IMG/VR virus record: IMGVR_UViG_3300042010_000106
Span: 186,001-250,000 of that record
Length of the DNA: 64,000 nucleotides
Strand: one strand, 5' to 3'
The position numbers and the translations under genes are program-made. The notes under the pieces are model-generated. The model saw only the letters and a program-made list of their open reading frames with translations. It had not been told where the DNA came from and ran no database searches. Positions 1 through 32,927 of the stretch are shown here, piece after piece (the first letter of the stretch is position 1; each line of letters begins with the position of its first letter).

Positions 1-189
1 ATGTTCCGCGTGTTGACGTTTGGACGGCGGGGCAGTTTTCGTGCTGGCACCATCGAGACTCAAGCCCGCTTTCTTGTAGCGTGAATTCGGGTGACTCTTC
101 AGGTATTTCGCTTGCTGATTCTTACTCGCACGATTCAGAAACCAATTGCCTTTCGGTTTGGTCTTAGCTTTCTTCGGTTTTAGGGCCAT
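1..189 (-). CDS. hypothetical protein, runs off the left edge
   Basis: Manual translation from ATG at 189: MALKPKKAKTKPKGNWFLNRASKNQQAKYLKSHPNSRYKK...; GGGGAGGG RBS upstream; open to position 1. Confidence 0.55.
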   Translation of the reverse strand, partial: MALKPKKAKTKPKGNWFLNRASKNQQAKYLKSHPNSRYKKAGLSLDGASTKTAPPSKRQHAEH

Positions 190-472
190 CTGGCGTCCCT
201 CCCCGCGCACGTTCGTTATCCAGAATACGTGCAAACGATTCACCAAAGAATCCGTATTTTGGATCGCGATATTTGCTAACGTCGATACGATTCCTTTGAT
301 TCGGAATCAATTCGTCAGCAGTGAAATCTGGTTCCGTATCAGGCATTACAAACGGCGGGAACATCTTGGCTGTGCGGCGTTCCGCAATGGCCTGCAATTC
401 CTGTGTGGCACCTTTGAAAATGTCTTTGAAATCTTTTGGTTCCTCGCTGGCAAGGCAGAGCATGATTTTCAT
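164..472 (-). CDS. hypothetical protein with shared N-terminal tag (MKIMLCLAS)
   Basis: 102-aa ORF in tightly packed minus-strand run. Confidence 0.6.
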   Translation of the reverse strand: MKIMLCLASEEPKDFKDIFKGATQELQAIAERRTAKMFPPFVMPDTEPDFTADELIPNQRNRIDVSKYRDPKYGFFGESFARILDNERARGGTPDGPKTEES

Positions 473-732
473 CGGGCTTCACCTTGTCGATTCATACGGC
501 CCAACCAATTCGATTTGGACACGTGCATTTTGTCGATGTAATCGTGAGGCATTGTCGCCCCTTGATCTTGAACCTGTGATTCGTTGGCAAGCAGGCTTTT
601 CTTCTTTGACCGTGGAATGTCACCGATCAATTCGTCATCGTCTGCCCAGCGTGCAATACGGGCGCCGCCGCGTTGGTCACTGTCGGTACTCTTTGATTCA
701 CGGCCTTGGATTTTAAGCGAGATTTTTGCCAT
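469..732 (-). CDS. hypothetical protein
   Basis: 87-aa ORF, ATGA overlap with downstream gene. Confidence 0.55.
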   Translation of the reverse strand: MAKISLKIQGRESKSTDSDQRGGARIARWADDDELIGDIPRSKKKSLLANESQVQDQGATMPHDYIDKMHVSKSNWLGRMNRQGEAR

Positions 733-738
733 TTGTTT

Positions 739-969
739 TTACTGGAAGCGCACGGTATCCACTATATCAATCCGCGTACGTTCCGCTCCTTTCGTATTGG
801 TGTCGATAATTCCCTTACGTTTCCGTTTGGGGATTTTCTTTGTCTTTTTGCCTTTCGTTTTGTAAACAGGTGGCTTACCTTCTTTCGCATTGTCGAAACT
901 GATATAGGGCAATGCGTCCCAACGGTCAGCACTTCGACTAGTACGAGCCAATGACAATTCAATTTCCAT
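739..969 (-). CDS. small basic hypothetical protein with shared N-terminal tag (MEIELSLAR)
   Basis: 76-aa ORF, K/R-rich C-terminal half. Confidence 0.6.
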   Translation of the reverse strand: MEIELSLARTSRSADRWDALPYISFDNAKEGKPPVYKTKGKKTKKIPKRKRKGIIDTNTKGAERTRIDIVDTVRFQ

Positions 970-995
970 TTGCGTTCCTCTGCTACAAAATTACG

Positions 996-1023
996 AAAAG
1001 AGCGGGGTTTTTAGGCCCCGCCC
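996..1023 (-). terminator. rho-independent terminator
   Basis: Minus strand GGGCGGGG-loop-CCCCGCTC followed by TTTT, just after the stop of 1030..3762. Confidence 0.7.
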
Positions 1024-1029
1024 ATTCGC

Positions 1030-3762
1030 TTAGTTGTAGCCTGCTGTATTGCGGTACTCTTCTGCGTTCTCAATCAAACCACGCAAAAGATCCGCAATGT
1101 TCTGCCCACTGTTCGCGAGGTTGTCTTCGTAATCTTCCAATTCATCTTCAGGGAAGTTATCGAAGAACTGACGCAAATCAGCCAGTTGTGAATCATCATC
1201 GTAACCAATCATCGACAGAATTTCTTCTGCAACCCGAACGATTTTGCTATTCAAATCAACCTTGGCATAGTTGCGATCTTCAATGATCTTTTTCGCTTCG
1301 TCTAAAACTTCAGCGTATTGTTCATCGTAGTTGTCGTCATCTGGATTGAGTGCAACACCCATTTCCTCGGTGTAAACCAATTCGCGGGCGGCTTCGTCTT
1401 CGTCCTGTGTTTCTTCGACTTCCAAAGATTCACAATAGTTTTCGAATTGCGTAATGGCTGTGCCCAGCATTGGCAACGACTTGATTGTACGAATGATTTG
1501 ACGATTGGAACGCGCCACTTCTTTCATACTGAAACGCGAAAATGCCAAGGTGTCTTCTTCCATACCACTGGCGTTTGCTGCATCTACGAGCAGGGGCAAG
1601 ATCGAAAGCATTTCAACTTTACGTGCGTTTTCATCCGTGCCGAAAACTACGTGACCGAACAGTTTGCCGAGTGGTGGGAAATCGTGTTCCTTATTCTCGT
1701 TGTACCATTCGTAGAACGCATCGTTATCCATGTCTTCCAGCGCGACTTTATGGCTGAGTGTCATTGGTGGATCGAGCAAGCGCCCGGTTGCCACACAAAG
1801 ACGCAGAACCAATTCAATAAAATCGTTTTCGTCTGGATCAATTGGATCGCCTTTCCATTCGTTAAGCTTGTCTGCAATGAATGGAACCATGTCGCTCAAG
1901 TTATTCGCAACGCTAGGCACGTTACGGTTTACGTACTTGAGCAAAGGCAGATGGAAGTGCGCCAGCATTTTGATGTTCCAATGCGTCCAGCGAGTCGAAT
2001 CAAAGTTCTCAGGCTCTGCTTCCATGTAATCAATAATGGCCTGCTTAATATCCTTGTACATATCCTGATTGGCAGCGTTTTGCATGCACTGTTGAAACGC
2101 CAACAGTTTTATGTGATCCATGAAAAAGCGCGTGCTGTTATTTTTCAAACGTTCCATCGCTTTGAATGGGCGACGTTTGCAAACCACTGGTGCCGCTTCT
2201 TCTACCGGTATTGCGAACACGGCGTCGGATTCCAGATACGAATCATCGTTATCCAGCAGCAAACACAGTGCAAGGCCAACGGTGGATGGGCCAACGTGCA
2301 TGCCTTCTTCTACAATGTCGGCATTGATTGTTTTCTCAGTGCCTTCAAGAAGCGCAACCAAATCATGCACTTGTTTTTCGAAATCTTTCACACCGAACAA
2401 CGGCATGTAACGTGCTGCACTTGCCATTGTGTATATCCACGATTTAACACGCGGACAATCTACAAACGTGTTTTCATCAGGCAGCGGATATGTACCATCC
2501 ATCAAGCCTGCAACCAATTCACGCATGCGGGAAACATTGTGTTCCTGTTCCATTCGCAGAACGTATTCACGCAGTACAGGCAAGCCGCTTTGTGCAAAAC
2601 GCCCGTGCAAACTTGGCGGGAATTCTTTGTAAGCAGACAACCGATCCTTGTTACCGAAGTCTTCCAAGAATCCAGCAGCACGACCAATCTGTGCAACAAC
2701 AGGATTCAATTTACCCATGGAAATTTGATTGGCGTATTCTTCCGCAAGTTTCGGACTGCCTTTCATCATTTCAGTCAGGGCTTTGATATCTTCGTCATGC
2801 AATGTGTCGGCAAAGCGAGCGATGTTCGCAATGATTGCACCTGATTCATCTGCGCCTTCGTCCATGCGTTGTTTTACGTACGGGACAATCAGCGATGGAT
2901 CTTCTGCAACGTCGTCCTGTGTGATTTCGCTGGTTTCACTGTCATTAACGCGATGGTGATGCGACGTACCGGCCCCGTCGTTGTAAAGGCCGCTGACAAC
3001 TTCGTAAAAACCTTCTGGAACGTGGGCGTTAATCTTGCGCAGGAAAGTATTCAACGTCTGTGAGAAACCGGGCACAGGGTTGCCGTAAACCCGCGTCTCA
3101 CGACGATACAAAACGTCACCGTCTTCGTTCACAAATGGTTTGACCAGACAGCGGCACAAAGGCTTCTGAATGTTCGTATCATCTGCACGAATTGCGTAGA
3201 CAACCAATGTACCTTCAGCAACGTCATTTTTCACGTGCTTGTTGTATTGCCCGTTGTCGTAACCTTCGCGGAAATCTTTCAAACGCATGCAGCTTTGATT
3301 GTCCCAATTACGGCCCGTAGACATACCAATAATGTCGTACGGATGGCAGGAAACAACCACTTGAATTCCGCTTTTATGGGGATCGCCACCAGTGGCTTTT
3401 GAGTTCTGCAATTGCGGGTCATTGTCGAACGCTGTTTTAGCGTGCACGTCTTTCGCAATTACTTTGCCAATGTTGAAAACGTTTTTCTGTTCTTTGTCAC
3501 TGGCTTTAACGCATTTCTTCGCCAGATAATCAGTGATGATATACCCGGCTTTCTGCACAGCCACACGAACAGCGGGCGGCACGGTGAAACGCATTTTCAT
3601 TTGCTTACCCGGTTCCAAATACAACCGGTAGCCTTTCTTTTTACCACCTTGCGGCATGAGACTTTGCAGAAGCTTTACAGCGGGGCCATTCTTGTTCCAG
3701 TCCCGACGATACTTCAACGCAGTCCGCATACTCACAGCGGCCAAGCTCATTTCGAGATTCAT
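1030..3762 (-). CDS. large hypothetical protein (paralog of 4016..6643), N-terminal tag MNLEMSLAA, acidic C-terminus
   Basis: 910 aa; first ~270 aa highly similar to the neighbour (TDYLAKKCVK..DKEQKNVFNIGKVI, SCHPYDIIGMSTGR.WD.QSCMRL, DVAEGTLV, YGNPVPGF). Confidence 0.8.
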   Translation of the reverse strand: MNLEMSLAAVSMRTALKYRRDWNKNGPAVKLLQSLMPQGGKKKGYRLYLEPGKQMKMRFTVPPAVRVAVQKAGYIITDYLAKKCVKASDKEQKNVFNIGKVIAKDVHAKTAFDNDPQLQNSKATGGDPHKSGIQVVVSCHPYDIIGMSTGRNWDNQSCMRLKDFREGYDNGQYNKHVKNDVAEGTLVVYAIRADDTNIQKPLCRCLVKPFVNEDGDVLYRRETRVYGNPVPGFSQTLNTFLRKINAHVPEGFYEVVSGLYNDGAGTSHHHRVNDSETSEITQDDVAEDPSLIVPYVKQRMDEGADESGAIIANIARFADTLHDEDIKALTEMMKGSPKLAEEYANQISMGKLNPVVAQIGRAAGFLEDFGNKDRLSAYKEFPPSLHGRFAQSGLPVLREYVLRMEQEHNVSRMRELVAGLMDGTYPLPDENTFVDCPRVKSWIYTMASAARYMPLFGVKDFEKQVHDLVALLEGTEKTINADIVEEGMHVGPSTVGLALCLLLDNDDSYLESDAVFAIPVEEAAPVVCKRRPFKAMERLKNNSTRFFMDHIKLLAFQQCMQNAANQDMYKDIKQAIIDYMEAEPENFDSTRWTHWNIKMLAHFHLPLLKYVNRNVPSVANNLSDMVPFIADKLNEWKGDPIDPDENDFIELVLRLCVATGRLLDPPMTLSHKVALEDMDNDAFYEWYNENKEHDFPPLGKLFGHVVFGTDENARKVEMLSILPLLVDAANASGMEEDTLAFSRFSMKEVARSNRQIIRTIKSLPMLGTAITQFENYCESLEVEETQDEDEAARELVYTEEMGVALNPDDDNYDEQYAEVLDEAKKIIEDRNYAKVDLNSKIVRVAEEILSMIGYDDDSQLADLRQFFDNFPEDELEDYEDNLANSGQNIADLLRGLIENAEEYRNTAGYN

Positions 3763-3774
3763 ATTGTGTTGTCC

Positions 3775-4011
3775 TTAGTGCGAGTACACACGCAAATCGA
3801 CATGATTACCTTTGAGGCTGTCGAGAACGGCGCTAAGCAATTCCATTTCCGCTGTCATGCGTTGCTTCATTGCAACCATTTGAGGATTGCCACCTTCCAT
3901 TGTGACCACGCTCATACGCACGCGTTTCAATGCGGCTTCAACCAGCTTTGCACATTCTTTTGCATCGCTGACTTTGATTTGTGCTGCTGCTGTTGCGAGT
4001 TCAATGTTCAT
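3775..4011 (-). CDS. small helical hypothetical protein with N-terminal tag (MNIELATAAA)
   Basis: 78-aa ORF filling the gap between the two large paralogs. Confidence 0.65.
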   Translation of the reverse strand: MNIELATAAAQIKVSDAKECAKLVEAALKRVRMSVVTMEGGNPQMVAMKQRMTAEMELLSAVLDSLKGNHVDLRVYSH

Positions 4012-4015
4012 AGAA

Positions 4016-6643
4016 TTAACTCAGTAAGTCGTCGAGAAGGGAATCGTCTTCGGCATTGATTTGGTCAGCAGTTTTCACGATGCGTTTGATCGAATCCAGT
4101 GTTTCCACTGCTTTCTCCGCTGCCTTTTTAATCTGGTAGAAAACGCCGCTAACACTGAACGCGTCTTTCTTAACCTGTTCATCGGTGTAGGCTTCAAGCC
4201 ATTCGACGTAGGGTTTCCAGTAATGCTCGCCGCCTGTTTCGTCTTCAGGGAAAGTTTCAACAAATTCCTGCAAGCGTGCCAAGTAGTTTTCACAGTCACG
4301 CAGAATTGCTTCCGGTTTATATTCCAAACGGGATTCAGGATCAGCAAAGAACACACGGCCAGCGCTATCTGCTGCTGTGAATTTCGAAGGCGCCCCGGCT
4401 GCACTGGCAAACGCTTGATACGTTCCAGAGTTGTACAGAATCGAGCCAAGCAACTGGCAGAATTCTTTAGGCGTTGGACTCTTCTTTTCCATGACTTGGA
4501 TGTAACGGAAACCACGATCATTACCCAAGAATTCATCAGGCGAAAGTGATTGTGCGTTACGCATGGTCAGCAGCATCGGGTATTTGATCAAGTCAATATT
4601 GGAGCTTTGCAGATTGGCTTTTTCCAGTGCACGCAAGGTATCGAACGAATCGAATTCAAACGTGAAATGTTCCGGTGCGTTTTTCTGAACCATTGCAACG
4701 GTGCCCAACATGTTCCAAAGGATTTGCTGGTCTGGATTACGTGCAACGTGCGAACCGGTAAGCTTTGCAAGTGCTGGCGCAATTTCGTCACCTTGTGGCA
4801 ACAGAATCGACAACATGTAACCGTCAACTTCCGGCGTGTGGGCTTCGATCATCGGGAACAATTCAGGCTTGTTGATCAACAGGCTAGGAAGTTCGTAGAA
4901 ATCGTCAACCATAATGCCACTGGATTGCACAGCCGCCATCAAATCACGTTGTGTGGAATTGTCACCTTTGTTGAAGGCAAGAATATTCATCACAGCGCCG
5001 GTCACGTATTGCTGAATGCGCTCAGGGAATCCTTGGCCTACCAATTTACGGCGCCATTTGCGGAATTCCAACAGCTTGTTAAAACTGGATTGTTGAATCA
5101 AATCCTCGGCCACGGTTTCCGCTTGGGAAACGCGATTATCACGCAGCAATTGCAGCATCCACGTACAGAAGATTTCAGGATCGTTTACGGTGTTCTGCAT
5201 CAGGATCATAAGCGGGCGGAAATCATCTTCGCTAATGCCCGGTTTTTCTGGTGCAGGAAGTTTACCCAATGCGGCATGCACGCTGTCTTGGAAATCATTC
5301 ACACCAAACATTGCTGCTTCACGATAAATGTTCAACACTTCCCAAATCATTTTGTGCAGGTTCGGGCGAGCGACAATATCTTTCGTGTTCAGGCTGATTC
5401 GACCGCGTACGTAATCCAGTGCAGTGCTAGACCAATCGGCATTATCGTCGTCCACGCCTTCCAGCAATTTGCTAGCGCCTTTCGGATCAACGTGAGACAT
5501 CGCACGTGAATTATGCACGTTGTAATCCGGCATCGCTTTGTGTACAGCGCGGGCCAGACGTTTGCTGGCGAGGAAACGACCTACACCATTCGCGTTACCG
5601 TGTTTAATCCCGTCTGCAAATGCTGCAACAGCTTCAGGATTATCGGCGATCAAACGTGCACCGATTTTGATGTTACGGGAATCGACATTCTTCGCATTGT
5701 TTCGCAGGAGCATCATTTGCTCACTGGCGCGATTCAGGTCTTTGCTCAAATCTTTGATTACGTACGAAACATAATCGGGGAATTCTTCTGGACTGGTCGC
5801 CAAATATTCGTGGATTTTAACCAAGCGCGACCAATTGGTGCCGCTGCTATTGCCCGATTCTTTCAAGGCAGTGCGGCCCACACCATCGTCATACAAACCC
5901 GACGACATTTCATACATTCCGTCTGGCACATTCTTATTCAGTTTGCGCAGGAATTTATTCAACGAGTCAGTAAAGCCGGGAACTGGATTGCCGTAAATCT
6001 TGAGTTCACGACGATACATCACGTCGCCTTTCTCACTGATAAACGGCTTCAACAGGCAGCGGCCTAACGGTGTGGTGATATTGCTGTCGCCACTTTTAAC
6101 CGCGTACGCAACTAAGGTGCCTTCTGCAACGTCGTTGTCTAGCTTGTCTGCGTTAATACCGTCGTCCATACCACCACGGCCATCGCGCAGGCGCATGCAG
6201 GATTGTGCATCCCAATCGCGCCCGGTACTCATGCCGATAATGTCATACGGGTGACACGACACAACCATTTCGAATTTGGCAGATTTCGAATTCTGCAATT
6301 GTGGATCGTTATCGAATGCTGCTTTTGCAATGTGATCTTTGCCAATCACTTTGCCGATATTGAAAACGTTCTTCTGTTCTTTATCGCCGACCTTTACGCA
6401 TTTCTTTGCAAGATAATCGGTGGCTACGTAGCCCGCTTTCGTGAGTGCATGCCGTACAGCCGCTGGAATCTTTACGCTGTGCGTTCCCAACGTGCCGCCG
6501 ATGGGAAAGTAAAGGCGATAACCGCGATTGTTCCCACGTGGCATAAGTTTCTGCAACAGCTTTACGGTCGGGCTTTTCTTGTCCCAATTGCGCCTGTATT
6601 TCAAAGCGCTTTTCATACTCACGGCAGCAATTGCGATTTCCAT
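4016..6643 (-). CDS. large hypothetical protein (paralog of 1030..3762), N-terminal tag MEIAIAA
   Basis: 875 aa; shared N-terminal domain, divergent C-terminal region that looks helical. Confidence 0.8.
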   Translation of the reverse strand: MEIAIAAVSMKSALKYRRNWDKKSPTVKLLQKLMPRGNNRGYRLYFPIGGTLGTHSVKIPAAVRHALTKAGYVATDYLAKKCVKVGDKEQKNVFNIGKVIGKDHIAKAAFDNDPQLQNSKSAKFEMVVSCHPYDIIGMSTGRDWDAQSCMRLRDGRGGMDDGINADKLDNDVAEGTLVAYAVKSGDSNITTPLGRCLLKPFISEKGDVMYRRELKIYGNPVPGFTDSLNKFLRKLNKNVPDGMYEMSSGLYDDGVGRTALKESGNSSGTNWSRLVKIHEYLATSPEEFPDYVSYVIKDLSKDLNRASEQMMLLRNNAKNVDSRNIKIGARLIADNPEAVAAFADGIKHGNANGVGRFLASKRLARAVHKAMPDYNVHNSRAMSHVDPKGASKLLEGVDDDNADWSSTALDYVRGRISLNTKDIVARPNLHKMIWEVLNIYREAAMFGVNDFQDSVHAALGKLPAPEKPGISEDDFRPLMILMQNTVNDPEIFCTWMLQLLRDNRVSQAETVAEDLIQQSSFNKLLEFRKWRRKLVGQGFPERIQQYVTGAVMNILAFNKGDNSTQRDLMAAVQSSGIMVDDFYELPSLLINKPELFPMIEAHTPEVDGYMLSILLPQGDEIAPALAKLTGSHVARNPDQQILWNMLGTVAMVQKNAPEHFTFEFDSFDTLRALEKANLQSSNIDLIKYPMLLTMRNAQSLSPDEFLGNDRGFRYIQVMEKKSPTPKEFCQLLGSILYNSGTYQAFASAAGAPSKFTAADSAGRVFFADPESRLEYKPEAILRDCENYLARLQEFVETFPEDETGGEHYWKPYVEWLEAYTDEQVKKDAFSVSGVFYQIKKAAEKAVETLDSIKRIVKTADQINAEDDSLLDDLLS

Positions 6644-6645
6644 GT

Positions 6646-7038
6646 TTATTCCTCGAAGGACTTGGCTGGTTTATACACCATCAACAAGCTGCCCCATTCT
6701 TCTTTGAAAAGCTTGAGTGTTTCTTGCATCGTCGCGTCCAATTTCAGCGCCGGACGGAAACCATTTTTGTAGAAGGTATGCAGACTGGCGACACTGGAAA
6801 CTTGACCGCCAATATCTGATTTGTATTTGCTCACAATGCCGCGCAGCAATTGATTACCGTAGCCTTGCCCGCGTTTGTCTTCGTCAATAACGAAATCAGT
6901 TACGCTGTGTTTGCATGGCGAATACTTCCCGCCAGTCTTCACGCAGATGTAACCATGGGCGCTACGGTATTCGGTGCCGAAGTGTTCATCGCGTTCTGTG
7001 ATTTTGATTGACGCTGCGACAGCCATTTCTACTTTCAT
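6646..7038 (-). CDS. GNAT-family acetyltransferase with N-terminal tag (MKVEMAVAAS)
   Basis: Acetyl-CoA motif A: FVIDEDKRGQGYGNQLL; motif B-like FYKNGF. Confidence 0.8.
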   Translation of the reverse strand: MKVEMAVAASIKITERDEHFGTEYRSAHGYICVKTGGKYSPCKHSVTDFVIDEDKRGQGYGNQLLRGIVSKYKSDIGGQVSSVASLHTFYKNGFRPALKLDATMQETLKLFKEEWGSLLMVYKPAKSFEE

Positions 7039-7545
7039 TTATTCGCCTATTCCTAATCCGACTGGATCGAAAGCGCCACTGTTACCAATTGCCGATTTGA
7101 TTTGCGAGGGATGAAAAACAATCCATTGCGGATGCGTACCGCCCACGTCGTAATGGTTCAGCAGCAACACACCATCACAACCTTTGCGCAAAGCTTCACG
7201 AATTACATCGGCGCGGCCTTCTTTGCCACCGTGGAAATCGTGCGTGTGCAATTTGTTGATTTTCAAATAGCACGGCAGCACGTGACCAATCACAGGCGAT
7301 GGAAAGTTTTCGTCGTAGCCTGCATAACGACCGGCAGTTTCTGCATCACTGGTAAAGAAAATACCGGATTCGCCTTCTGCTTTATTCAGGTGCGTCATGA
7401 AAGCGTGAAAGGATGGTTTGTTTGTGCCGTGATAAACACGCAAAGGTTTCCCGTGCGCGTCCACACATTTCGAATGACCAAACCACGCTTTAAACGCTGG
7501 GGTTTCTTGTTGCTTGGCAGTCGCTAAAGCGAGTTGGATTTTCAT
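7039..7545 (-). CDS. ADP-ribosyltransferase-like (ART-PolyVal type) protein with N-terminal tag (MKIQLALATA)
   Basis: TPAFKAWFGHSKCVDAHGKPLRVYHGT, GIFFTSD, DGVLL, WIVFHPSQIKSAIGNSGAFDP match recalled polyvalent-protein ART-like domain. Confidence 0.7.
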   Translation of the reverse strand: MKIQLALATAKQQETPAFKAWFGHSKCVDAHGKPLRVYHGTNKPSFHAFMTHLNKAEGESGIFFTSDAETAGRYAGYDENFPSPVIGHVLPCYLKINKLHTHDFHGGKEGRADVIREALRKGCDGVLLLNHYDVGGTHPQWIVFHPSQIKSAIGNSGAFDPVGLGIGE

Positions 7546-7817
7546 TTATTCACGACAACAGCTTCGTTGCTGTCCCATTCGTAACGAGTGGTGATTTCTT
7601 TTTCTTCACCGTTGGCACCAGTCAGATACAGAGTGAAATCAATTTTATCGAGTTGTTCTGTGTACTGATTGATGTTGTTGCGAATTGCTTCCTGCTTATC
7701 ACCTTTGCCGCGAGACAAAACAGGATTGCCGTGTTTCACATCACGGATTTCATAACCGCGAATTTTGAAACCACGTGGTGCCATATTTGCAGCAGCAACA
7801 GCCAATTGAATTTGCAT
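7542..7817 (-). CDS. hypothetical protein with N-terminal tag (MQIQLAVAAA)
   Basis: 91-aa ORF, overlaps downstream start. Confidence 0.65.
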   Translation of the reverse strand: MQIQLAVAAANMAPRGFKIRGYEIRDVKHGNPVLSRGKGDKQEAIRNNINQYTEQLDKIDFTLYLTGANGEEKEITTRYEWDSNEAVVVNK

Positions 7818-7822
7818 TGTGT

Positions 7823-8368
7823 TTAAACCTTTGCGTTCTGTTCAGGGCGGGCATTGATCGCAGCAGCGAAGGCCGCGTATGCCTCTGTGTGGTAGTCGGT
7901 GGCGCTGGCGGTCGCTACCTGCACCGTCATGGCCCCTGTCAGAGCCTCTACAGCGCTCGCCACGGCTTTAAAGTCGCGTGCCAGTGCCCGAACCTCACCC
8001 GCTGGCAGGAAATCGACTGCGGCGGGCCGGGAGACGTCCTGTACGGCCACGTCTTCGCGGCTCTTCACCATGATGCTATCCACGCACCGGGCAGGCAGCG
8101 CTTCGTAATACGCAAACGAACCATCGTGATTCGGCGTCATTAACGCAAGGTCATAAGTCACTTTGCAATCGCTGAATGCAACGCCAACAATCTTTGCAGG
8201 AATTGCGTAAGTGTTTGCTTCTGCCAACGTTAGGTTTTCAATCGCTGGATGGAAATAAACCTCTTCTTCCATTTTATAACGACTTGGGAAATGTTGCCCG
8301 ATACTGGAAAGCTCGACGTTCATTGTTTTAGGCCCTATAGAAACAGAGAAAGGGCGACATATAGTCAC
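7823..8368 (-). CDS. hypothetical protein (no tag)
   Basis: 181-aa ORF; 3' half noticeably GC-richer; start uncertain. Confidence 0.55.
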   Translation of the reverse strand: MTICRPFSVSIGPKTMNVELSSIGQHFPSRYKMEEEVYFHPAIENLTLAEANTYAIPAKIVGVAFSDCKVTYDLALMTPNHDGSFAYYEALPARCVDSIMVKSREDVAVQDVSRPAAVDFLPAGEVRALARDFKAVASAVEALTGAMTVQVATASATDYHTEAYAAFAAAINARPEQNAKV

Positions 8369-8386
8369 CCTTCCTTTAAATTACTG

Positions 8387-8851
8387 CTATTTGTGCAAAT
8401 GAATCTGCGATACGTCCATTGGAACATACGCAATTTCAGCGTCTTTGAATCGTTCGTGGATTGCATGCAGATTTGATTCATACACGGCAATGCCATCGTA
8501 ATGCGGCGCAGGGTATTCAGGCACACTCAAATAGGCCCACAATTCGTCGGCAAAGTTCATGTGCACAGGATCGCCCAGCTTGATTGGTTTAGCGGAACGC
8601 GTATTCAATTCATGCGGAACGAAATAGGTGTTGTAAATCTCTACTGCGCGCTTGTCCGTTCGGGTATCGAATAGACGTTTGATATCCACGTGCGCTTTCA
8701 TGATTATGTGCCCGTATTCCTTTGCGTAATCAATTGACGCCGAAAAGAACGCAGGCCGGTATTCAGAAAACTTTGTGAACTTCTTTTTGGTGCCATGAAA
8801 CAAAAGGTCAGGCACTTTCGATGTGCTGGCAATAGCCAGTTCAATCTTCAC
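8387..8851 (-). CDS. second ADP-ribosyltransferase-like protein with N-terminal tag (MKIELAIAS)
   Basis: LFHGT...AFFSASIDYAKEYG...YDGI pattern as in 7039..7545; GTG start at 8851 forms GTGA overlap with upstream stop. Confidence 0.6.
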   Translation of the reverse strand: MKIELAIASTSKVPDLLFHGTKKKFTKFSEYRPAFFSASIDYAKEYGHIIMKAHVDIKRLFDTRTDKRAVEIYNTYFVPHELNTRSAKPIKLGDPVHMNFADELWAYLSVPEYPAPHYDGIAVYESNLHAIHERFKDAEIAYVPMDVSQIHLHK

Positions 8852-9030
8852 GCGGCGCACTTCATTGTGCGGGCCAATTCAGGATATTCCTGTTCGAATT
8901 TGCGCCAGCTTTCAAGCATACGTGCGGTACGCTCTTTGTTCTCTGCGTAAATGCGATCCTTTTCTTCTTGCGGCAATGCGTCGAATTCAGCGCGAATTCT
9001 TTTTAGGTCGAATTTGTGTGCGTGGAGCAT
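8848..9030 (-). CDS. small charged hypothetical protein
   Basis: 60-aa ORF, stop overlaps next start. Confidence 0.5.
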   Translation of the reverse strand: MLHAHKFDLKRIRAEFDALPQEEKDRIYAENKERTARMLESWRKFEQEYPELARTMKCAA

Positions 9031-9232
9031 TTGAGCGTCCTTTCTTTTGTTTGAGATATGGGCGATTCAATTGTGGGCGAAACCCCGGTGGCCCTGCTTG
9101 ACCACGGCAACCACCAGCGCCGTCGTTCCAATCCTCTCCCGGTAGCCCTTCGTCTCCCAATGGGCCGTGTTCACCACGACAGCCAACTGAAAGGCCCAAT
9201 AGTGCAACTGCTAACGCCAATGAGTTACGCAT
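8987..9232 (-). CDS. putative small lipoprotein with Gly-X-Y repeats
   Basis: Signal peptide with lipobox-like LSVG-C; GEHGPLGDEGLPG and GQAGPPG collagen-like triplets. Confidence 0.55.
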   Translation of the reverse strand: MRNSLALAVALLGLSVGCRGEHGPLGDEGLPGEDWNDGAGGCRGQAGPPGFRPQLNRPYLKQKKGRSNAPRTQIRPKKNSR

Positions 9233-9628
9233 TTAATCACCATTTAAAATCACTGGCGGGCACCCAATGCACGCGCCCATTTGCAGAACGGAATCGAGGA
9301 AATAAATGTTGTTTGTGAAGCTGTCATTCTGCTGTGTGGCCCAACCGAACGTATTACCGGCAGCGGTCTTTTCACCCGTCACCGCATCCACACCGGCTGT
9401 TTCCACGTAGGCGCTGTATTCGTAGAATTTGCCACCGCTGAAACCGTAAGCCATCACATTCACACGCGCTTTGAATTCACCAGTTGTGATGTCCTCATAA
9501 CACTTGAACATTTTGACACTGGTTGCATCAGGATCACCCGGTTCAAAAGAGAAGCCACGCGATTCAAGCTTTTCTATGAACTGTGCGGCTTCGGTTGGAC
9601 TGGCAGCGACTGCTAATTGAATTTCCAT
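9233..9628 (-). CDS. hypothetical protein with N-terminal tag (MEIQLAVAAS)
   Basis: 131-aa ORF, coupled to upstream stop. Confidence 0.65.
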   Translation of the reverse strand: MEIQLAVAASPTEAAQFIEKLESRGFSFEPGDPDATSVKMFKCYEDITTGEFKARVNVMAYGFSGGKFYEYSAYVETAGVDAVTGEKTAAGNTFGWATQQNDSFTNNIYFLDSVLQMGACIGCPPVILNGD

Positions 9629-11301
9629 TAATCACCTTTCGTTGCCAGATCCATTGCTTTCTGAATCTTGCTATTTGGACGGGTATTCGTTTTCGCAAAT
9701 ACAGGCTCGAAAACAGACGGGTCGATGTAGTTCGCAATTGCCGTGGTGGCCGTCACGTTCTCGCCGCTCATATGTCCGAGTTCTTTACCGATGTTCAGGC
9801 ATTGCTTTTCAATCCACGCATTCACGTCTGCATCTTTCGCACGGGCACCGAACGGACATTTCGCCATCAGAACCATTGCCATTCCAGTACCACGCAATTT
9901 GCGGAATTTGTGAATGGTGAAGCCTTCAGGGAAACCGAGTTCGCGCAGGTATCCGTTGATGTTCGAATTGCTGATTGGTTTGCCACGGAACGTGAACACG
10001 TATTCACCGGGCTTTTTGTCAAAGCAGAATTCGTTGATGGATTCCTTGAGCATTTCGGTACGCTGCTCGTTGAATTTGATTACGTGTTTCTGTGCACCGC
10101 CTTTCTTCCCGGCGTACTTCATAATCACGCGTGTTTCATTCAAATTCAGATGCTTACGCAGCAGTGTGGAAATGCCGTAAGTGGTTTCGCCAGCGGTATT
10201 GGCTTTGGTTGAACCGATACGTGCACTGGTCTGATAAATCACTTCGCAAATTGCAGCAGCCGTACCTTTCAGTGTACCGGGGCCTTTGCCCAAATCCACC
10301 AGCCATTTCTTTGTCCACTTCGGCAAATCAGGAAGCATGCCCTGAATAATGCTGAAACTTTCAACACGACCTTCGGTACGCGATTTGATCGTCTGCACAT
10401 TCGTGAAATTGGCAGCAAACGGCGCCTTGTATTTGCACACATAGGCGTTGTCATCGTCGGGCCGGTATTTCGGATTCATTTCACCAATGCCAATTGGTTT
10501 GTTCAGCAATTGCAAACCGGCTTCTGTGTAGAAATTCCCTTTGTCGTCCATCTTGCCGACGAACCATTCAGGGATATCGTGCTGCACATTGGCTAAGCGC
10601 TCACGAATTACAACCACGTCCAAAAGGTGTTCCCCGGACTGGCGCACGACGTTGGCAATTGCTTTGTCATACACCGCTTTCCGTTGCCTGCGCATATCCA
10701 AATATTCTTGGTGTTGCGGCAGGTTAGAACCGAGTTCCTTTGCTTTCTCACGCCATGCTGTCAGCGTGGTTTCAGGCATCACGTTACCGCTGACTTTCCC
10801 GTGTGTTTTCACATGGTTAGCGAGCCGATCGTACAGCGCGGTTTGACTACTGGTTTGAACCTCTTCCCCTTCGTGCATAAACATTTTGCTGATATGCGAA
10901 TCTTTGAACAGACCCGCATTCTGCATCAAACGTTTGTTAGCACTTTCCGAACCATTCCGCGCCAGACGAATATCGTTGAACAAAGAAAGCTGCACTTTGT
11001 TCAGGCTGGTGTCTTTCTCGAACGCTTTCTTTTTCTCTTTCAGTTTGAGGAAACACGCGTCCATAAGCAGCGTGTATTTGTGGTCTGCAACGTCGTGCCC
11101 TTCGACCATTAATGCAATAGGCTTTTTGAATACGCGAGCAATCTGGAATTGATCAAGGAAAGGCTGCGCAGTGTGCGCCCACGTCTTGAGCTTTTTCAGA
11201 AAGTCTGTGCCGAAGTCGTATTCTGGCGCTTTCAAGAAGGCAATCAAAATCTTTAGGAAAGCGTCGGCACTGCCCGGTGCAGCGGCCAAAGAGATTTGCA
11301 T
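9628..11301 (-). CDS. type IB DNA topoisomerase with N-terminal tag (MQISLAAA)
   Basis: TopIB catalytic-domain motifs in order: SARIGS..TYGISTL..H, YAGKKG, FTIHKFRKLRGT, LGH, NYIDP (R,K,R,H,Y pentad apparently intact). Confidence 0.8.
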   Translation of the reverse strand: MQISLAAAPGSADAFLKILIAFLKAPEYDFGTDFLKKLKTWAHTAQPFLDQFQIARVFKKPIALMVEGHDVADHKYTLLMDACFLKLKEKKKAFEKDTSLNKVQLSLFNDIRLARNGSESANKRLMQNAGLFKDSHISKMFMHEGEEVQTSSQTALYDRLANHVKTHGKVSGNVMPETTLTAWREKAKELGSNLPQHQEYLDMRRQRKAVYDKAIANVVRQSGEHLLDVVVIRERLANVQHDIPEWFVGKMDDKGNFYTEAGLQLLNKPIGIGEMNPKYRPDDDNAYVCKYKAPFAANFTNVQTIKSRTEGRVESFSIIQGMLPDLPKWTKKWLVDLGKGPGTLKGTAAAICEVIYQTSARIGSTKANTAGETTYGISTLLRKHLNLNETRVIMKYAGKKGGAQKHVIKFNEQRTEMLKESINEFCFDKKPGEYVFTFRGKPISNSNINGYLRELGFPEGFTIHKFRKLRGTGMAMVLMAKCPFGARAKDADVNAWIEKQCLNIGKELGHMSGENVTATTAIANYIDPSVFEPVFAKTNTRPNSKIQKAMDLATKGD

Positions 11302-11302
11302 T

Positions 11303-11752
11303 TCATCGCTCCATATTTTTCAGGACGTAATCCATCCGCTCAAATTTAATGGCGTATTTCCGAGACTTGATGTCCTCGGCTGGAATACGGATACCCACGT
11401 AATAGCACGTGTGGTTCAAACGTTCTTTTGCGTCTTCGACAATTCGATTGTTATCGTCGAGGCACATCAGCACGGTATCAATGTAATCGCGTTTGCCATC
11501 AAGGCGAACTTTGTAGCCGTAGCACAATGTGTAATTGTGTTTCTCGGCGAAGGCAATAAACAAATCAACATTGTCCGGGTTCGGAATGTCGTCTGTGAAA
11601 TGCCCACGCTTCATTAGCGGCATTTGAATCAAACGCTGTCCGAGGTCACGCCACGTTGGCCGACTAACAGTCAGCCGTGTGATTACAGGCTTCGGTATGT
11701 AGTTCTTTACAGTGTTTAGAACGGCGCTTGCGCAACTGATAATAATCTTCAT
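11303..11752 (-). CDS. hypothetical protein with N-terminal tag (MKIIISCASA)
   Basis: 149-aa ORF coupled to tmk stop. Confidence 0.6.
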   Translation of the reverse strand: MKIIISCASAVLNTVKNYIPKPVITRLTVSRPTWRDLGQRLIQMPLMKRGHFTDDIPNPDNVDLFIAFAEKHNYTLCYGYKVRLDGKRDYIDTVLMCLDDNNRIVEDAKERLNHTCYYVGIRIPAEDIKSRKYAIKFERMDYVLKNMER

Positions 11753-12375
11753 TAGGGGATTCCGTAGAGTCGATCCAGTGCAGCGAAAATGTCTTGTTTT
11801 ACTTTCTCAATGGATTGCGATGCGTCGATGGTAATCCACGAATCTTTCTTGTCCGCAATGCGCTGGTACGTGGTGCGACACATGTTCAAATATGCGTGGC
11901 CGCGCTGTTCAATCTTGTCGAGTGCAACGCCTTTATCCACGCGGGATTTGATCATGCGTTCGACACTCAATTCGGCGGTAATGTCGAGGAAAATTGTCAG
12001 GTCTGGTTCGACAATGTACGGCACACTCAATTCGTGCACGGCCATAATCTCAGGGCAATTCTGATACACCCACGACGAAGCGTAATAACGTTCACTGAAA
12101 ACATGAATGCCTTCAGCCATCTTCGGACGGATTACGTGTTTCGTGTGGTCAATGCGACCGGCGTACGCACAAAGCGCTTCGGCCTGCACAGGCGGATCAA
12201 ATTCATCACTGATTACCAAACGACGGCAGATTTCAGCGAAAGGAGTTCCGCCAATTTCACGCGTCAAATAGAAAGGCAGTGCACGCGATTGGTAATACTC
12301 AGGCATGTATTCCGACACAGTGCCTTTGCCGCATGCTTCGATACCTTCCAGAACTGCAAATTTCCCATACGCCAT
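11752..12375 (-). CDS. tmk: thymidylate kinase
   Basis: P-loop VLEGIEACGKGT, TREIGGT, ERYYASSWVYQ, EPDLTIFLDI. Confidence 0.9.
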   Translation of the reverse strand: MAYGKFAVLEGIEACGKGTVSEYMPEYYQSRALPFYLTREIGGTPFAEICRRLVISDEFDPPVQAEALCAYAGRIDHTKHVIRPKMAEGIHVFSERYYASSWVYQNCPEIMAVHELSVPYIVEPDLTIFLDITAELSVERMIKSRVDKGVALDKIEQRGHAYLNMCRTTYQRIADKKDSWITIDASQSIEKVKQDIFAALDRLYGIP

Positions 12376-12944
12376 TATAAATACACCCGCTGTACTTGCA
12401 TTACATTACGCTTGGAGTCACCACCACGCCAAGCAAGTTTTTTGTATATCTGGTGTTTGCGTGTGATCGCCAAGGGACGACGTTTCGCACGCACTGCACA
12501 CCGAATTAATCCCGTGGTTTCACTGAGGGTCAAGATCCCGGCACCCTCTGCCACAATTTCAGCTTTGATTTCTGGATAGCAACGCGATTTCATAATCGAC
12601 GGCGGAAACACAAAGAACAATTGAGTTGTGTGACTCAAATATTCCCGCCATTTCTTATCGCTACGGTAATCAGCCAAACAGCTTTTGATTTCCACACCGA
12701 CAATGTTGCCCACAAAATCCATTGCCATAACGTCCAAACGGCGAGCGCCCCAACGCTCTACGCCCACTTCCCTGTGAACGCTGTATGTTTTCTTCGCCCA
12801 ATAATACACAGCCGCTTGATGCAATTTCTCTGTGATTAATTTGCGTCCTGTTAACGAAGTGTCATCAATGTTCACAGGTTTCGGTGCTGGGGTTGCACGG
12901 GGTTTTCTTTTTCCCCGTGGTCTAGATCGCCGTTTGTACGCCAT
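12375..12944 (-). CDS. mmcB: MmcB-family PD-(D/E)XK DNA repair nuclease with basic N-terminal extension
   Basis: RRLDVMA..GVEIKSCLADYRSDKKWREYL..LFFVFP. Confidence 0.75.
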   Translation of the reverse strand: MAYKRRSRPRGKRKPRATPAPKPVNIDDTSLTGRKLITEKLHQAAVYYWAKKTYSVHREVGVERWGARRLDVMAMDFVGNIVGVEIKSCLADYRSDKKWREYLSHTTQLFFVFPPSIMKSRCYPEIKAEIVAEGAGILTLSETTGLIRCAVRAKRRPLAITRKHQIYKKLAWRGGDSKRNVMQVQRVYL

Positions 12945-12946
12945 GT

Positions 12947-14287
12947 TTAACGCAGTCCCATCAGTTTCATGTAAGGAGTCAACACACCGTTACCGTCGTG
13001 CATTTTCAGGTATTCCGAAACGGCCTTTTGATACACGGCCATCGGTTGGCGCTGGTCATACGCACCTTTGAAATCCTGAATTGCGTTCATGATATCGGCA
13101 TCGGTAGCACCACCACGGCGCGTACGGTTGATCAACGACTTCAAGCGTGTTTCGGTATCCTTGTTCAGCAAACGAACTGGAAACAGTTTCCAGCGGCTGA
13201 AAAGAACACTTCGATCTTTTGTGTATTTCTTCATTGCAGTGCAGAACTTGTCGAACGGCAGCGCGTATATGTCCGGCGCGTCCGTGTATTCAGGCAGTGC
13301 AACCGAAATGCTCGGCGTGTTATAGGCTTCGCCCAGCACTTTTGCATCTTTGTAGTTGTAATTGCCAACGAACATCTTTTTCAAACTGGCATCGGTAAAC
13401 GCTTTGGTACTCTTCAGGTTTGTACCCTGCGTAACAACACGTTCTTTCGTCGTAATCAATTTGACGACCATTGCTTCGTGCGGAAAAGCCTCTTTCAATT
13501 TGGCTGCACACGTTTGCAAATCGTCTTCAGTGATTACCTTGTGCGTGTACCAAGACGACCAGTGCATCAAGGCGCCGGGAACACCGCGCTCTGCAATAAT
13601 TGCGTAAAACTCTTCGGTTGCATCACGCGCAATTTCTTCGTGCGTACCGGCCAGAATGATGTGGAAACCGAAGGTGTTAATCCTGTGCATTTCCGATTGA
13701 AACAGCGGGCCGTGGTTTGCGTGGATCAATGCCATAGCACGTTCTGGATCGGTCGGAAGTTTTTCAACACCTTTCACGTAGTTGTACAGGTGAATCATTT
13801 CGTGAATGATTGTGTTCGTGAAAAGCACACGGTCAATCATCGAACTTTCATTCACATGCAGAGTAAACAACGCTTTCCGATTCGGTGCCGTGGCAGAAGG
13901 CGACCATTTCATTTCGGCCATGCCCCACACGCCTGCTTTACGTGCTTTTACAATTTTCACAGGCGGGCATGCACCGTTGAAATACAGCTTATTGTAATAG
14001 TCGTAAAGAGGTTTGACCATTTCGATTTTCGGTTCAAACAAAAGGTACGGCGCATTGGTTGGATCGGGACGCACGGTCAAACGTTCTTCGCTCATTTTCA
14101 TAAGCGCGTTGCCTTCTTTCTTGGTCAGGCTGAACAGAATTTCCGGGTTGTGTTCATGAATCACGACATATTTGGTGCCGTGCAAATACATTTCGAATTG
14201 ATCGCCCATAACGAACGTCAAATAGTAATCAGGATGCGCGTCGTCGTATTGCACGTCAGCTTTGTTGATAAAACGATAGGTACTCAT
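12947..14287 (-). CDS. SprT-like zinc metalloprotease with extra N-terminal domain
   Basis: YDYYNKLYFNG, TIIHEMIHL (HEXXH), HGPLFQSEMHRIN. Confidence 0.8.
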   Translation of the reverse strand: MSTYRFINKADVQYDDAHPDYYLTFVMGDQFEMYLHGTKYVVIHEHNPEILFSLTKKEGNALMKMSEERLTVRPDPTNAPYLLFEPKIEMVKPLYDYYNKLYFNGACPPVKIVKARKAGVWGMAEMKWSPSATAPNRKALFTLHVNESSMIDRVLFTNTIIHEMIHLYNYVKGVEKLPTDPERAMALIHANHGPLFQSEMHRINTFGFHIILAGTHEEIARDATEEFYAIIAERGVPGALMHWSSWYTHKVITEDDLQTCAAKLKEAFPHEAMVVKLITTKERVVTQGTNLKSTKAFTDASLKKMFVGNYNYKDAKVLGEAYNTPSISVALPEYTDAPDIYALPFDKFCTAMKKYTKDRSVLFSRWKLFPVRLLNKDTETRLKSLINRTRRGGATDADIMNAIQDFKGAYDQRQPMAVYQKAVSEYLKMHDGNGVLTPYMKLMGLR

Positions 14288-14742
14288 GGCATTACCTGTT
14301 GAATGTACGTCACGCGGCCAGCATTGCGCAGCGGACTATTTATAAGGTCTTCTTGTGTGAGTGTGTTCGACATTCCGATTGCAGGAGGATCGGTAATGTA
14401 CAGGTAATAATTCGTCGCCAATGGAAGGCCCATTGTGATGTCGCGGATTTCAACGAATGGCTGTGCGTATTGCGGAATCACCATGTGCGGGTTGTCGAGT
14501 TCCCACTTGTGACACAACACAATAAACACAGGCATTTCATACGCAAAATCTTGTCGATGGTACGCGTACATCACGTCCTGATTGAGCCGGGTCATCAACG
14601 CAGTGTATGCGTCTTTGCACGTGTGCCCAATGATTGGAAAAATACCCACGTCACGGATTGGAAACGTTGGAAATAAACCTTCGTTTATGTCACCGGAATC
14701 CACAAGTTTGAATTCGTCCGATTTACCGTAGACGCAGCTCAT
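14284..14742 (-). CDS. hypothetical protein
   Basis: 152-aa ORF with ATGA overlaps at both ends. Confidence 0.6.
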   Translation of the reverse strand: MSCVYGKSDEFKLVDSGDINEGLFPTFPIRDVGIFPIIGHTCKDAYTALMTRLNQDVMYAYHRQDFAYEMPVFIVLCHKWELDNPHMVIPQYAQPFVEIRDITMGLPLATNYYLYITDPPAIGMSNTLTQEDLINSPLRNAGRVTYIQQVMP

Positions 14743-15587: not shown

Positions 15588-15654
15588 GTTAATTCTCCAT
15601 CGCGTAATGAAAACGCGTGCTTTTGTAAGTAACTTCCCTTTAAATTAGCGCCAG

Positions 15655-15690
15655 AAACACAAAAGCCCACGGTTAGGCGGGCTTTGTGTT
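15655..15690 (-). terminator. rho-independent terminator
   Basis: AACACAAAGCCC...GGGCTTTTGTGTTT inverted repeat right after stop at 15698. Confidence 0.7.
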
Positions 15691-15697
15691 GGAGCAA

Positions 15698-15877
15698 TTA
15701 ACGCAAATATGTAGAAGGTTCTTCGCTCAGGTAACGGCCCATTGAGCGGGCCATTCCATTCTTTTGATTCGCAGTGATTGGCATTTTAATGTATCGAATG
15801 CCGTGCGGATCAGAGCGCCGAACGCCAACCAACAATTCGCCGGACATAAAAGATTTAACGTACTCAGGGCTAGCCAT
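15698..15877 (-). CDS. 59-aa hypothetical protein below ORF-track cutoff
   Basis: Manual translation MASPEYVKSFMSGELLVGVRRSDPHGIRYIKMPITANQKNGMARSMGRYLSEEPSTYLR*; GAGG RBS; fills gap before terminator. Confidence 0.55.
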   Translation of the reverse strand: MASPEYVKSFMSGELLVGVRRSDPHGIRYIKMPITANQKNGMARSMGRYLSEEPSTYLR

Positions 15878-15891
15878 AAGACGAACCTCGA

Positions 15892-20046: not shown

Positions 20047-20049
20047 TTT

Positions 20050-20790: not shown

Positions 20791-20791
20791 G

Positions 20792-21346: not shown

Positions 21347-21361
21347 TTGTTAGGCTCCGAT

Positions 21362-32537: not shown

Positions 32538-32546
32538 GATGTTTCC

Positions 32547-32918: not shown

Positions 32919-32927
32919 GGCGTTTCC

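Follow-up and report, generated by a model that had tools for sequence, protein, structure and literature searches.

A jumbo phage carries the same nine-residue peptide at the very start of about a dozen unrelated enzymes and large proteins. This peptide most likely acts as an address label that would load them into the virus head for delivery with the DNA, although this function is inferred. The analysed window is a stretch of 64,000 nucleotides, positions 186,001 to 250,000 of the IMG/VR record IMGVR_UViG_3300042010_000106. A first-pass annotation of this window had listed 13 proteins beginning with one N-terminal pattern, and this observation is confirmed, since all 13 N-termini are present at the stated coordinates on the minus strand. 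The tag, M-[KE]-h-x-h-A-h-A-small, or more broadly M-[KEQN]-h-x-h-[AS]-h-[AS]-[small], sits on at least 23 unrelated protein families (homology clusters) in 13 related genomes, and we found no published description of it.

To test whether the pattern exceeds chance, a position-specific scoring matrix (PSSM) was built only from the tags of two relatives, Lu11 and HRDY3, and was run over all 5,626 ATG, GTG and TTG codons of the window in six frames. It gave 8 hits of at least 8 bits, and every one is the first start codon of a minus-strand ORF (472, 969, 4011, 7038, 7545, 7817, 8851 and 9628), whereas twenty shuffled windows gave 0-2 hits, with a mean of 0.6. Five weaker tags are backed by orthologues. 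Those at 3762, 6643, 11301 and 11752 score lower, but their orthologues in other genomes carry strong tags, and a 14th gene, absent from the first-pass list (7823-8323, minus strand, 166 aa), carries a degenerate tag, MNVELSSIG, while tblastn shows that its orthologues begin MKTEIAIASV or MKMEIATAAE. The weakest is the tag MEISLAAP of a 184-aa protein beside terL (20792-21346, minus strand), which is marginal, having no homologue in any retrieved locus, no Pfam hit and no independent support.

The tagged genes, all on the minus strand, begin with a 102-aa protein at 164-472 (MKIMLCLAS, followed by SEE; 14.9 bits with the independent PSSM), with no Pfam or PHROG hit, and a 76-aa protein at 739-969 (MEIELSLAR, 10.7 bits), whose orthologues Lu11 gp217 and in HRDY3 are tagged. 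The gene at 1030-3762 encodes a 910-aa protein with the tag MNLEMSLAA, followed by a conserved N-terminal domain of ~270 aa and unknown fold, whose family has 2,613 representatives, and a variable C-terminal part. A 78-aa protein at 3775-4011 (MNIELATAA, 17.7 bits) has tagged orthologues in two of the retrieved loci, L012 and L013. The 875-aa protein at 4016-6643 is a paralogue of the 910-aa protein with a shortened tag, MEIAIAAV, and this paralogue line shows tag decay in other genomes. It is followed by a 130-aa GNAT-like acetyltransferase at 6646-7038 (MKVEMAVAA, 11.7 bits), whose HRDY3 orthologue is tagged (MEMTLALAAS). Its Pfam assignment (Acetyltransf_7, E=3e-5) is below the gathering score, which qualifies the GNAT fold named in the first-pass annotation.

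The gene at 7039-7545 encodes a 168-aa predicted ADP-ribosyltransferase (ART-PolyVal, Pfam 3.9e-20) with the tag MKIQLALAT. Its PHROG hits fall inside 1,664-aa and 2,900-aa profiles, its AlphaFold model matches the PARP/tankyrase fold, and its homologues P0001-P0014 are tagged while distant ones are not. A 91-aa protein at 7542-7817 (MQIQLAVAA, 17.2 bits) has tagged orthologues. The 154-aa protein at 8387-8851 starts with GTG and carries the tag (M)KIELAIAS (18.7 bits) with a weak ART-PolyVal hit (Pfam E=3e-4), and the 131-aa acidic protein at 9233-9628 has the best tag in the window (MEIQLAVAA, 22.7 bits). The last two are a 557-aa type IB topoisomerase at 9628-11301 (MQISLAAAP; Pfam Topoisom_I 1.3e-12), whose N-terminus is conserved across five clades in the alignment, and a 149-aa protein at 11303-11752 (MKIIISCAS), which is homologous to PaBG gp086 and has orthologues tagged MKIQIAIASA or MKMMLALAAS. 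The description of these proteins as mostly unrelated is correct with two exceptions, namely the paralogous 910-aa and 875-aa proteins and the two ART-PolyVal hits at 7039-7545 and 8387-8851. It should be noted that untagged genes do sit inside the cluster, at 469-732, 8848-9030 and 8987-9232, the last being lipoprotein-like.

Concerning the nature of the signal, the tag is conserved as peptide and not as DNA, since synonymous codons vary freely and the upstream DNA is unrelated. It is also portable, being gained or lost on orthologues. SprT-like orthologues are tagged in the PaBG clade, where they carry a 10-aa extension, but not in Lu11 or in the window, where the KMPT-N + SprT-like metallopeptidase gene (12947-14287, minus strand) is untagged, and Lu11 gp078 is tag plus KMPT-N while two paralogues start directly with KMPT-N. 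The tag has low pLDDT and lies outside the folded domain in two AlphaFold models, that of the ADP-ribosyltransferase and that of the 910-aa protein, in which residues 1-11 are below 50. In the whole Lu11 genome (21,927 start codons), all 10 hits of at least 12 bits are gene starts in the gp204-gp219 topoisomerase IB cluster, and the other true-start hits are gp068, gp078, gp202 and gp203, so that the tag occurs only in this cluster, beside the prohead protease and on one KMPT-N protein.

The tags diverge in a concerted way within each genome, as expected for one shared partner. Tag identity at variable positions is 0.43 for non-homologous proteins of the same genome and 0.35 for orthologues in different genomes, with 0 of 2,000 permutations reaching the observed difference. 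Residues 6 and 8 covary (SS 20, AA 19, mixed 5). An S-L-S-A dialect occurs in Dickeya phage JA11 and in unrelated metagenomic contigs, on SprT-like, ART-PolyVal and Acb1 proteins.

The genomic context links the tag to the head. In NCTB and PaBG the tagged genes, including topoisomerase IB, lie between the head maturation protease and the major capsid protein gene, Lu11 gp074 and gp068 and their HRDY3 orthologues flank the protease and are tagged, and in the retrieved locus L029 the protease itself starts MKLDLKDI, like its neighbours MKIDL and MKIDV. In the window, gene gaps are -4 to +12 nt, and the block runs terminase, portal, gp5-like spike, fibre and then the cluster. The genes at the head of this codirectional block (17540-24658, minus strand) encode the portal, a clade-specific 194-aa protein, the KMPT-N/KTSC protein and the intein-containing large terminase. 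Late expression is inferred from gene order only, a late-promoter motif search being uninformative.

We consider it somewhat more likely than not that the nonapeptide is a capsid-targeting signal. In this view, one phage-encoded receptor inside the assembling prohead (scaffold or core, portal, or the inner capsid surface) would recognise it, and the tagged cargo would be enclosed in the head and leave with the DNA at the next infection. This cargo would comprise ADP-ribosyltransferases, a GNAT-like protein, topoisomerase IB, KMPT-N/SprT-type proteins, ~900-aa virion proteins and small proteins of unknown function. The analysis establishes that the tag exists, is non-random, acts at the peptide level, is portable, diverges in concert within each genome and is associated with head genes, while packaging, the identity of the receptor, ejection and any removal of the tag are inferences, and no receptor was identified.

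The first-pass interpretation, a portable T4-like tag with a cleavage site that loads host-takeover enzymes for co-injection, is partly supported. Portability on unrelated folds holds, whereas capsid targeting and co-injection rest on indirect lines: the inferred late structural operon, the head-module synteny, a cargo type (ART-PolyVal, KMPT-N, SprT-like and Acb1) of polyvalent-protein or counter-defence domains (PMC7824862), and virion proteomics of two proteins. PaBG gp83 (MLIKINL..., next to topoisomerase IB) is a virion band (PMC7412058), but has only the loose M-x-I-x-I-x-L form of the tag. RsoM2USA ORF132, a homologue of the 910-aa protein, is a virion band of 76.6 kDa (PMC8504454), but lacks the tag, so for that family the tag is not needed for packaging. 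There is no direct evidence that any tagged protein of a Lu11-type phage is in virions. The proposed cleavage after the Ala run by the prohead protease is not supported by the tag sequences, since a logo of 106 unique tags shows no conserved Glu at or after position 10, while the likely capsid-protein maturation site in this clade keeps a Glu; a T4-style cycle of targeting and clipping is therefore not evident. The proposed beta-strand is not supported either, as AlphaFold gives a low-confidence helix in one model and coil in the other. The tag does not fit a Sec or lipoprotein signal peptide, which has a positively charged n-region, a hydrophobic core of about 10-15 residues and then a cleavage site or lipobox, since the conserved block is only 8-9 residues, half of the tags have Glu at position 2 and polar sequence follows; a genuine lipoprotein-like leader exists only on the untagged gene 8987-9232.

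Among the alternatives, two are unlikely to a similar degree. The tag could be a degron or unfoldase-recognition signal, by which a host or phage AAA+ protease or chaperone (ClpXP/ClpAP-type) would remove, or hand over, a set of takeover enzymes at a defined time. The tag is short, N-terminal, hydrophobic and outside the fold, jumbo phages of this subgroup are reported to encode ClpP, ClpX, ClpA or BCS1-type factors (PMC7824862), and the genome-specific dialects would also fit co-evolution with an adaptor. However, this does not explain the tight link with head-morphogenesis genes or the tagged protease of L029, a late structural operon is an odd place for enzymes that must act early unless they are packaged, and the ~900-aa family is a virion protein in RsoM2USA. 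Alternatively, the conserved part could be mainly a processing or modification site, where a dedicated protease or N-terminal modifying enzyme acts on small residues at positions 6 and 8 (a -3/-1-like rule) and so activates the proteins, with no necessary relation to packaging. A6 (86%), A8 (97%) and a small residue at position 9 are the most conserved positions, A-x-A and S-x-S covary, the 194-aa protein next to the portal gene, found only in the A-x-A clade, has a GNAT-like motif and an invariant Cys, and SprT-like peptidases accompany the cluster in every lineage examined. Against this, more distant dialects lack the small-x-small element but keep M-K-I-x-h (MKIDL and MKISFSL), and there is no proteomic evidence of cleavage: PaBG gp83 is listed between bands whose proteins have calculated masses within 0.4 kDa of its own, although the paper gives no measured band size. 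This reading can also coexist with packaging.

Slightly less likely still, the tag could be a shared assembly strand or helix docking these proteins onto one cytoplasmic or membrane-associated complex in the infected cell, not in the capsid. The alternating hydrophobic pattern, the dialects and the position outside the fold fit any common docking partner, but the head-gene synteny, operon position and virion proteomics argue against it, and there is no candidate hub outside the head module. An artefact of translation or shared ancestry (a favoured 5' initiation context, a recombination site for cassette swapping, or simple paralogy) is very unlikely, for although codon 2 is often AAA or GAA and many of the genes are translationally coupled with weak ribosome-binding sites, conservation is at the amino-acid level with free synonymous variation, Ala/Ser at positions 6 and 8 has no obvious role in initiation, there are 23 non-homologous clusters, and the tag is absent from the other ~375 Lu11 genes.

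A broader reading, which remains possible but tentative, is that of a widespread, previously unrecognised cargo-loading code of large phages. The peptide would exist in at least two covarying dialects (A-x-A and S-x-S) co-evolving with a genome-specific prohead receptor, and would let phages load an exchangeable arsenal of separate counter-defence and takeover enzymes (ART, GNAT, Acb1, SprT-like, topoisomerase IB, possibly ligase), a modular alternative to polyvalent fusion proteins that could be reprogrammed simply by adding the tag. If the tag is a packaging signal, it identifies from sequence alone the injected proteome of a large and poorly studied group of jumbo phages, which would give a first function (delivered with the DNA) to dozens of hypothetical proteins and link the polyvalent protein idea to a concrete, testable loading mechanism. 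It would also provide a very short tag for placing chosen proteins inside phage heads of Pseudomonas, Dickeya and Erwinia phages, the T4 and P1 signals being the only such tags we found described, and the dialects offer a natural experiment for mapping the receptor.

The proposed system would be a functional analogue of the T4 capsid targeting sequence (CTS) of internal proteins IPI-III and Alt. Both are short N-terminal peptides (about 10-20 aa) shared by otherwise unrelated proteins, including an ADP-ribosyltransferase, and in T4 the CTS loads them into the prohead core for ejection with the DNA (PMC7411985, PMC3012670). The present tag is on many more families (at least 23 clusters, with 14 genes in this window), is followed by no conserved Glu-type prohead-protease site, and its pattern (h-x-h-A-h-A-small), described without a sequence comparison with the CTS, and its genome-specific dialects are its own; its packaging is inferred. 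It would also be the unfused counterpart of the giant polyvalent proteins of phages and conjugative elements (Iyer, Burroughs, Aravind 2017), which are predicted to be injected with the DNA. The domain repertoire is the same (ART-PolyVal, KMPT-N, SprT-like/zincin peptidases, GNAT and nucleotide-signal phosphodiesterases), but here the domains are separate ORFs of 76-910 aa with their own starts and stops, each carrying the same tag, rather than one giant polypeptide. In P1, the N-terminal 30 residues of DarB direct an anti-restriction protein, and a reporter, into the capsid (PMC9024508), although that signal is described for one protein within a stepwise Dar assembly pathway and is not a consensus repeated on a dozen proteins. 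Finally, in encapsulins a short terminal peptide docks diverse cargo enzymes to the inside of an HK97-fold shell, but those peptides are usually C-terminal and without sequence relation to the tag, the compartments hold no DNA, and nothing is ejected.

The analyzed sequence belongs to a ~312-kb jumbo-phage contig (IMGVR_UViG_3300042010_000106), whose large terminase is 64-66% identical to those of Pseudomonas phages Lu11 and HRDY3 and 47% identical to that of PaBG, which places it in the 'Lupandier' group (PMC7412058). Nearly all genes of the window lie on the minus strand. The terminase itself (21362-24658, minus strand) is 1,098 aa long and contains an intein (Pfam Intein_splicing, E=1e-21, residues ~560-659), its relatives aligning in 2-3 pieces, and the PaBG paper also reports inteins in Lupandier terminases. 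Elsewhere in the window, a 180-aa Lys/Ala-rich protein (45154-45696, minus strand, starting MAGKKAAAKKAPAKKA) resembles histone H1 or AlgP, has no Pfam hit and lies in the region with the most extreme AT skew of the window (-0.40 at 44-46 kb).

The first-pass annotation had listed 13 proteins sharing an N-terminal peptide, and this observation holds, since all 13 N-termini were found at the positions it had assigned to them, the gene at 8851 using a GTG start. A loose regular expression hits 16 times in the six frames of the 64 kb, and 10 of these hits are gene starts in the cluster. A stricter and independent test employed a PSSM built only from Lu11 and HRDY3 tags, which was used to score 5,626 candidate start codons and returned 8 hits of at least 8 bits, all 8 being the first start codon of minus-strand ORFs between 472 and 9628, while shuffled windows gave 0-2 hits. 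The weaker tags at 3762, 6643, 11301 and 11752 are vouched for by orthologues that carry strong tags, whereas the one at 21346 has no homologue in any fetched locus and stays marginal. One more gene, 7823-8323, has a degenerate tag, and its orthologues are tagged. Among the untagged genes lying inside the tagged cluster are an 81-aa lipoprotein-like gene (8987-9232, minus strand), with a leader ending LSVGC and collagen-like G-x-y repeats, and the next, 60-aa gene (8848-9030, minus strand), which it overlaps by 44 nt.

Conservation resides in the peptide and not in the nucleic acid. Leu, Ile and Ala codons within the tags vary freely, and the 30 nt upstream of each start are unrelated, both within and between genomes. 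The logo derived from 106 unique tags reads M1, [EK]2, [IMVL]3, [QEM]4, [LI]5, A6 (86%), [LV]7, A8 (97%), [ASGT]9 and [VSAT]10, nothing being conserved after that and, in particular, no Glu.

To assess portability, the first 12 residues were removed from 112 tagged proteins of 13 genomes, which then fall into 23 BLASTP clusters. Identified folds are ART-PolyVal (Pfam 4e-20), a weak GNAT and topoisomerase IB, and the AlphaFold model of the ART protein matches PARP/tankyrase catalytic domains. PHROGs gave no hit for 7 of the 10 tagged proteins scanned, the 91-aa protein among them, and the two ART-type proteins matched only families of unknown function. The SprT-like/KMPT-N peptidase is untagged in the window and in Lu11, but its PaBG-clade orthologues have a 10-residue tag extension, and Lu11 gp078 is tag plus KMPT-N, while two paralogues start directly with KMPT-N. 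The ART homologues listed as P0001-P0014 are tagged and more distant ones are not, the conserved domain starting near residue 18. In both AlphaFold models the tag is the least confident segment and lies outside the fold (mean pLDDT is 58 in the ART model and 31 in the 910-aa N-domain model).

Each genome shows its own dialect of the tag, which is M[KEQ]I[EQ]LA[VL]A in the window, MKIQLAVA in Lu11, MEMMLALA in HRDY3-like genomes, MKVNIALA in the genome labeled L020, MKISFSL or MKITFPI in PaBG-like and MKIDL or MKIISISA in NCTB-like genomes. At variable positions, non-homologous proteins of the same genome share 0.43 tag identity, orthologues in different genomes 0.35 and non-homologues in different genomes 0.31, and none of 2,000 label permutations reached the observed difference. 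It should be noted that the tags were selected with a PSSM. This concerted divergence is what a set of ligands tracking one genome-specific partner would look like. A further dialect, or simply paralogues, could be present in phiRSL1, where small proteins near the head-tail connector (ORF123, ORF124 and ORF127) share I-[ST]-A-A-x-x-R-L at the N-terminus, and in the locus L031 (2596-4832), where three proteins start MKIEAAxRL. No shared tag is present around the topoisomerase IB of phiRSL1.

A census of the whole Lu11 genome, scanned piece by piece with a PSSM built from window and HRDY3 tags only (21,927 start codons), showed that all 10 hits of at least 12 bits are gene starts in gp204-gp219. 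The remaining true-start hits are topoisomerase IB gp203, gp202, gp068 and gp078, and about 11 low-scoring hits fall in short or internal ORFs. The tag therefore marks about 17 of 391 genes.

Concerning the link to the head, in NCTB and PaBG the tagged genes, including topoisomerase IB, lie between the head maturation protease and the 'ATPase', virion protein and major capsid protein genes. In Lu11 and HRDY3 the cluster has moved next to the portal and terminase genes, but two tagged genes still flank the protease, namely gp074 (MFISIAWA in Lu11, MIIALAWA in HRDY3) and gp068 (MKVYLAIAAS in Lu11, MEMMIALAAS in HRDY3), and in L029, another of the fetched loci, the protease itself begins MKLDLKDI, like its neighbours. 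The conserved 'ATPase' next to the capsid gene (Lu11 gp067, L004:4303-6207; HRDY3 L005:4212-6187, L004 and L005 being the corresponding loci) gives only low-complexity acidic-region hits in Pfam and is split into two ORFs in HRDY3. It may be a scaffold or core protein rather than an ATPase, which makes it a candidate tag receptor. RefSeq also annotates in Lu11 a second 'major head protein' and a 'head-tail connector protein' (gp106 and gp107, at 31978-34083 of the Lu11 locus L034), far from the main capsid gene gp065, neither of which has a Pfam hit.

In the window the cluster is the tail end of a tightly packed codirectional block, in the order intein-containing terminase, KTSC, a 194-aa protein, portal, gp5-like spike, fibre, SprT-like, MmcB-like and dTMP kinase, with intergenic gaps of -4 to +12 nt. 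A search of the window for the Lu11 'middle/late promoter' (TATAAATA-type) gave only 2 exact hits, one of them about 50 nt upstream of the SprT-like gene, which is not above chance, and a sigma-70 and terminator scan showed nothing above shuffles, apart from two hairpins. Two terminator-like hairpins, at 1000-1023 and 8347-8375 (minus strand), sit in the only two larger intergenic gaps of the cluster (60 and 63 nt) and may split it into sub-operons.

The arrangement extends beyond the clade. The first ~270 residues of the 910-aa and 875-aa proteins (1030-3762 and 4016-6643, minus strand) form a highly conserved N-terminal domain with motifs S-x-HPYD, MSTGR-x-WD, CMRL and KPF, which has no Pfam, PHROG or PDB match, PDB sequence searches with both proteins giving nothing and a Foldseek search of the 290-aa N-domain model giving no significant match (best E 0.14). 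Yet the domain defines a very large family, with 2,613 cluster representatives in public data at E of 1e-3 or better, and also occurs in multiple copies inside proteins of 1,800 aa or more, one of which begins with an ART-PolyVal-like N-terminus. Of the best 150, 44 start with M-x-h-x-h-[SA]-h-[SA], and positions 6 and 8 covary (SS 20, AA 19, mixed 5). Atu_ph07 gp394 is an untagged family member in a non-structural region.

Contigs carrying tagged members show the same arrangement. One of them, L039 (GC 0.40), has five consecutive tagged genes, including a SprT-like and an ART-PolyVal protein, while L041, an unrelated 48.6-kb metagenomic contig, has tagged SprT-like and Acb1 (PF23474) proteins, two ~800-aa proteins and several small proteins. 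In L041 the homologue of Acb1, an anti-CBASS phosphodiesterase (12367-12876), carries the tag MKITISLKS, and the NAD-dependent DNA ligase (14280-16328) has NVIISLSAS ten residues after its called start, so its true start may be a tagged one. The cultured Dickeya phage JA11 has M-x-I-x-V-S-[LI]-S-A on five neighbouring genes.

Experimental anchors were sought in the literature. PaBG gp83, which is encoded next to topoisomerase IB and starts MLIKINL, is one of 14 Coomassie-visible virion bands, and the PaBG capsid protein loses about 20% of its mass on maturation (PMC7412058). RsoM2USA ORF132, 34% identical to the N-domain of the 910-aa protein, is a virion band of 76.64 kDa, with a computed mass of 76,624 Da, but lacks the tag (PMC8504454). 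The JA11 paper has no virion proteomics, and a literature search on HRDY3 found no paper. Polyvalent proteins with ART and GNAT domains are proposed to be injected (PMC7824862).

Taken as a whole, the proposal of the first-pass annotation, that the peptide is a portable signal loading proteins into the head for injection, is partly supported. We favour a capsid-targeting function, which we consider only somewhat more likely than not. The analysis establishes a portable tag with genome-wide specificity, head-gene association and dialects, while binding to a prohead component, packaging and ejection are inferred. Concerning cleavage, the evidence points both ways. The small residues at positions 6, 8 and 9 resemble a -3/-1-type site, and the capsid proteins of Lu11 and HRDY3 carry [VI]-A-T-A-S near the expected maturation point. 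Against cleavage by the prohead protease, however, the feature conserved across the capsid proteins of all five clades is a Glu a few residues later. More distant dialects lack the small-x-small element altogether. The 194-aa protein located between the portal and KTSC genes (19462-20046, minus strand) was considered as a tag-processing enzyme. It is found only in the Lu11-like clade and has a GNAT-like motif (VEVRQ...PGLARxVM), an invariant Cys and a weak Pfam hit to N-terminal glutamine amidase. It could be an N-terminus-modifying or tag-processing factor, but this is a lead only, and the near-invariant His is absent in the window copy. Three rival explanations, in which the tag is a degron, a processing-only site or a non-capsid docking strand, are not excluded by the present sequence-based evidence. 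A translational or ancestry artefact is unlikely.

No description of this motif was found in the literature searched on Lu11, PaBG, JA11 and jumbo-phage comparative genomics. The concept itself is known from T4, where IPI-III and Alt carry a 10-20-aa CTS that binds the prohead core and is removed by gp21 (PMC7411985), and from P1, where the first 30 residues of DarB suffice for packaging (PMC9024508). Compared with these, the tag described here is unusual for its breadth, its dialects and its tie to polyvalent-protein domains.
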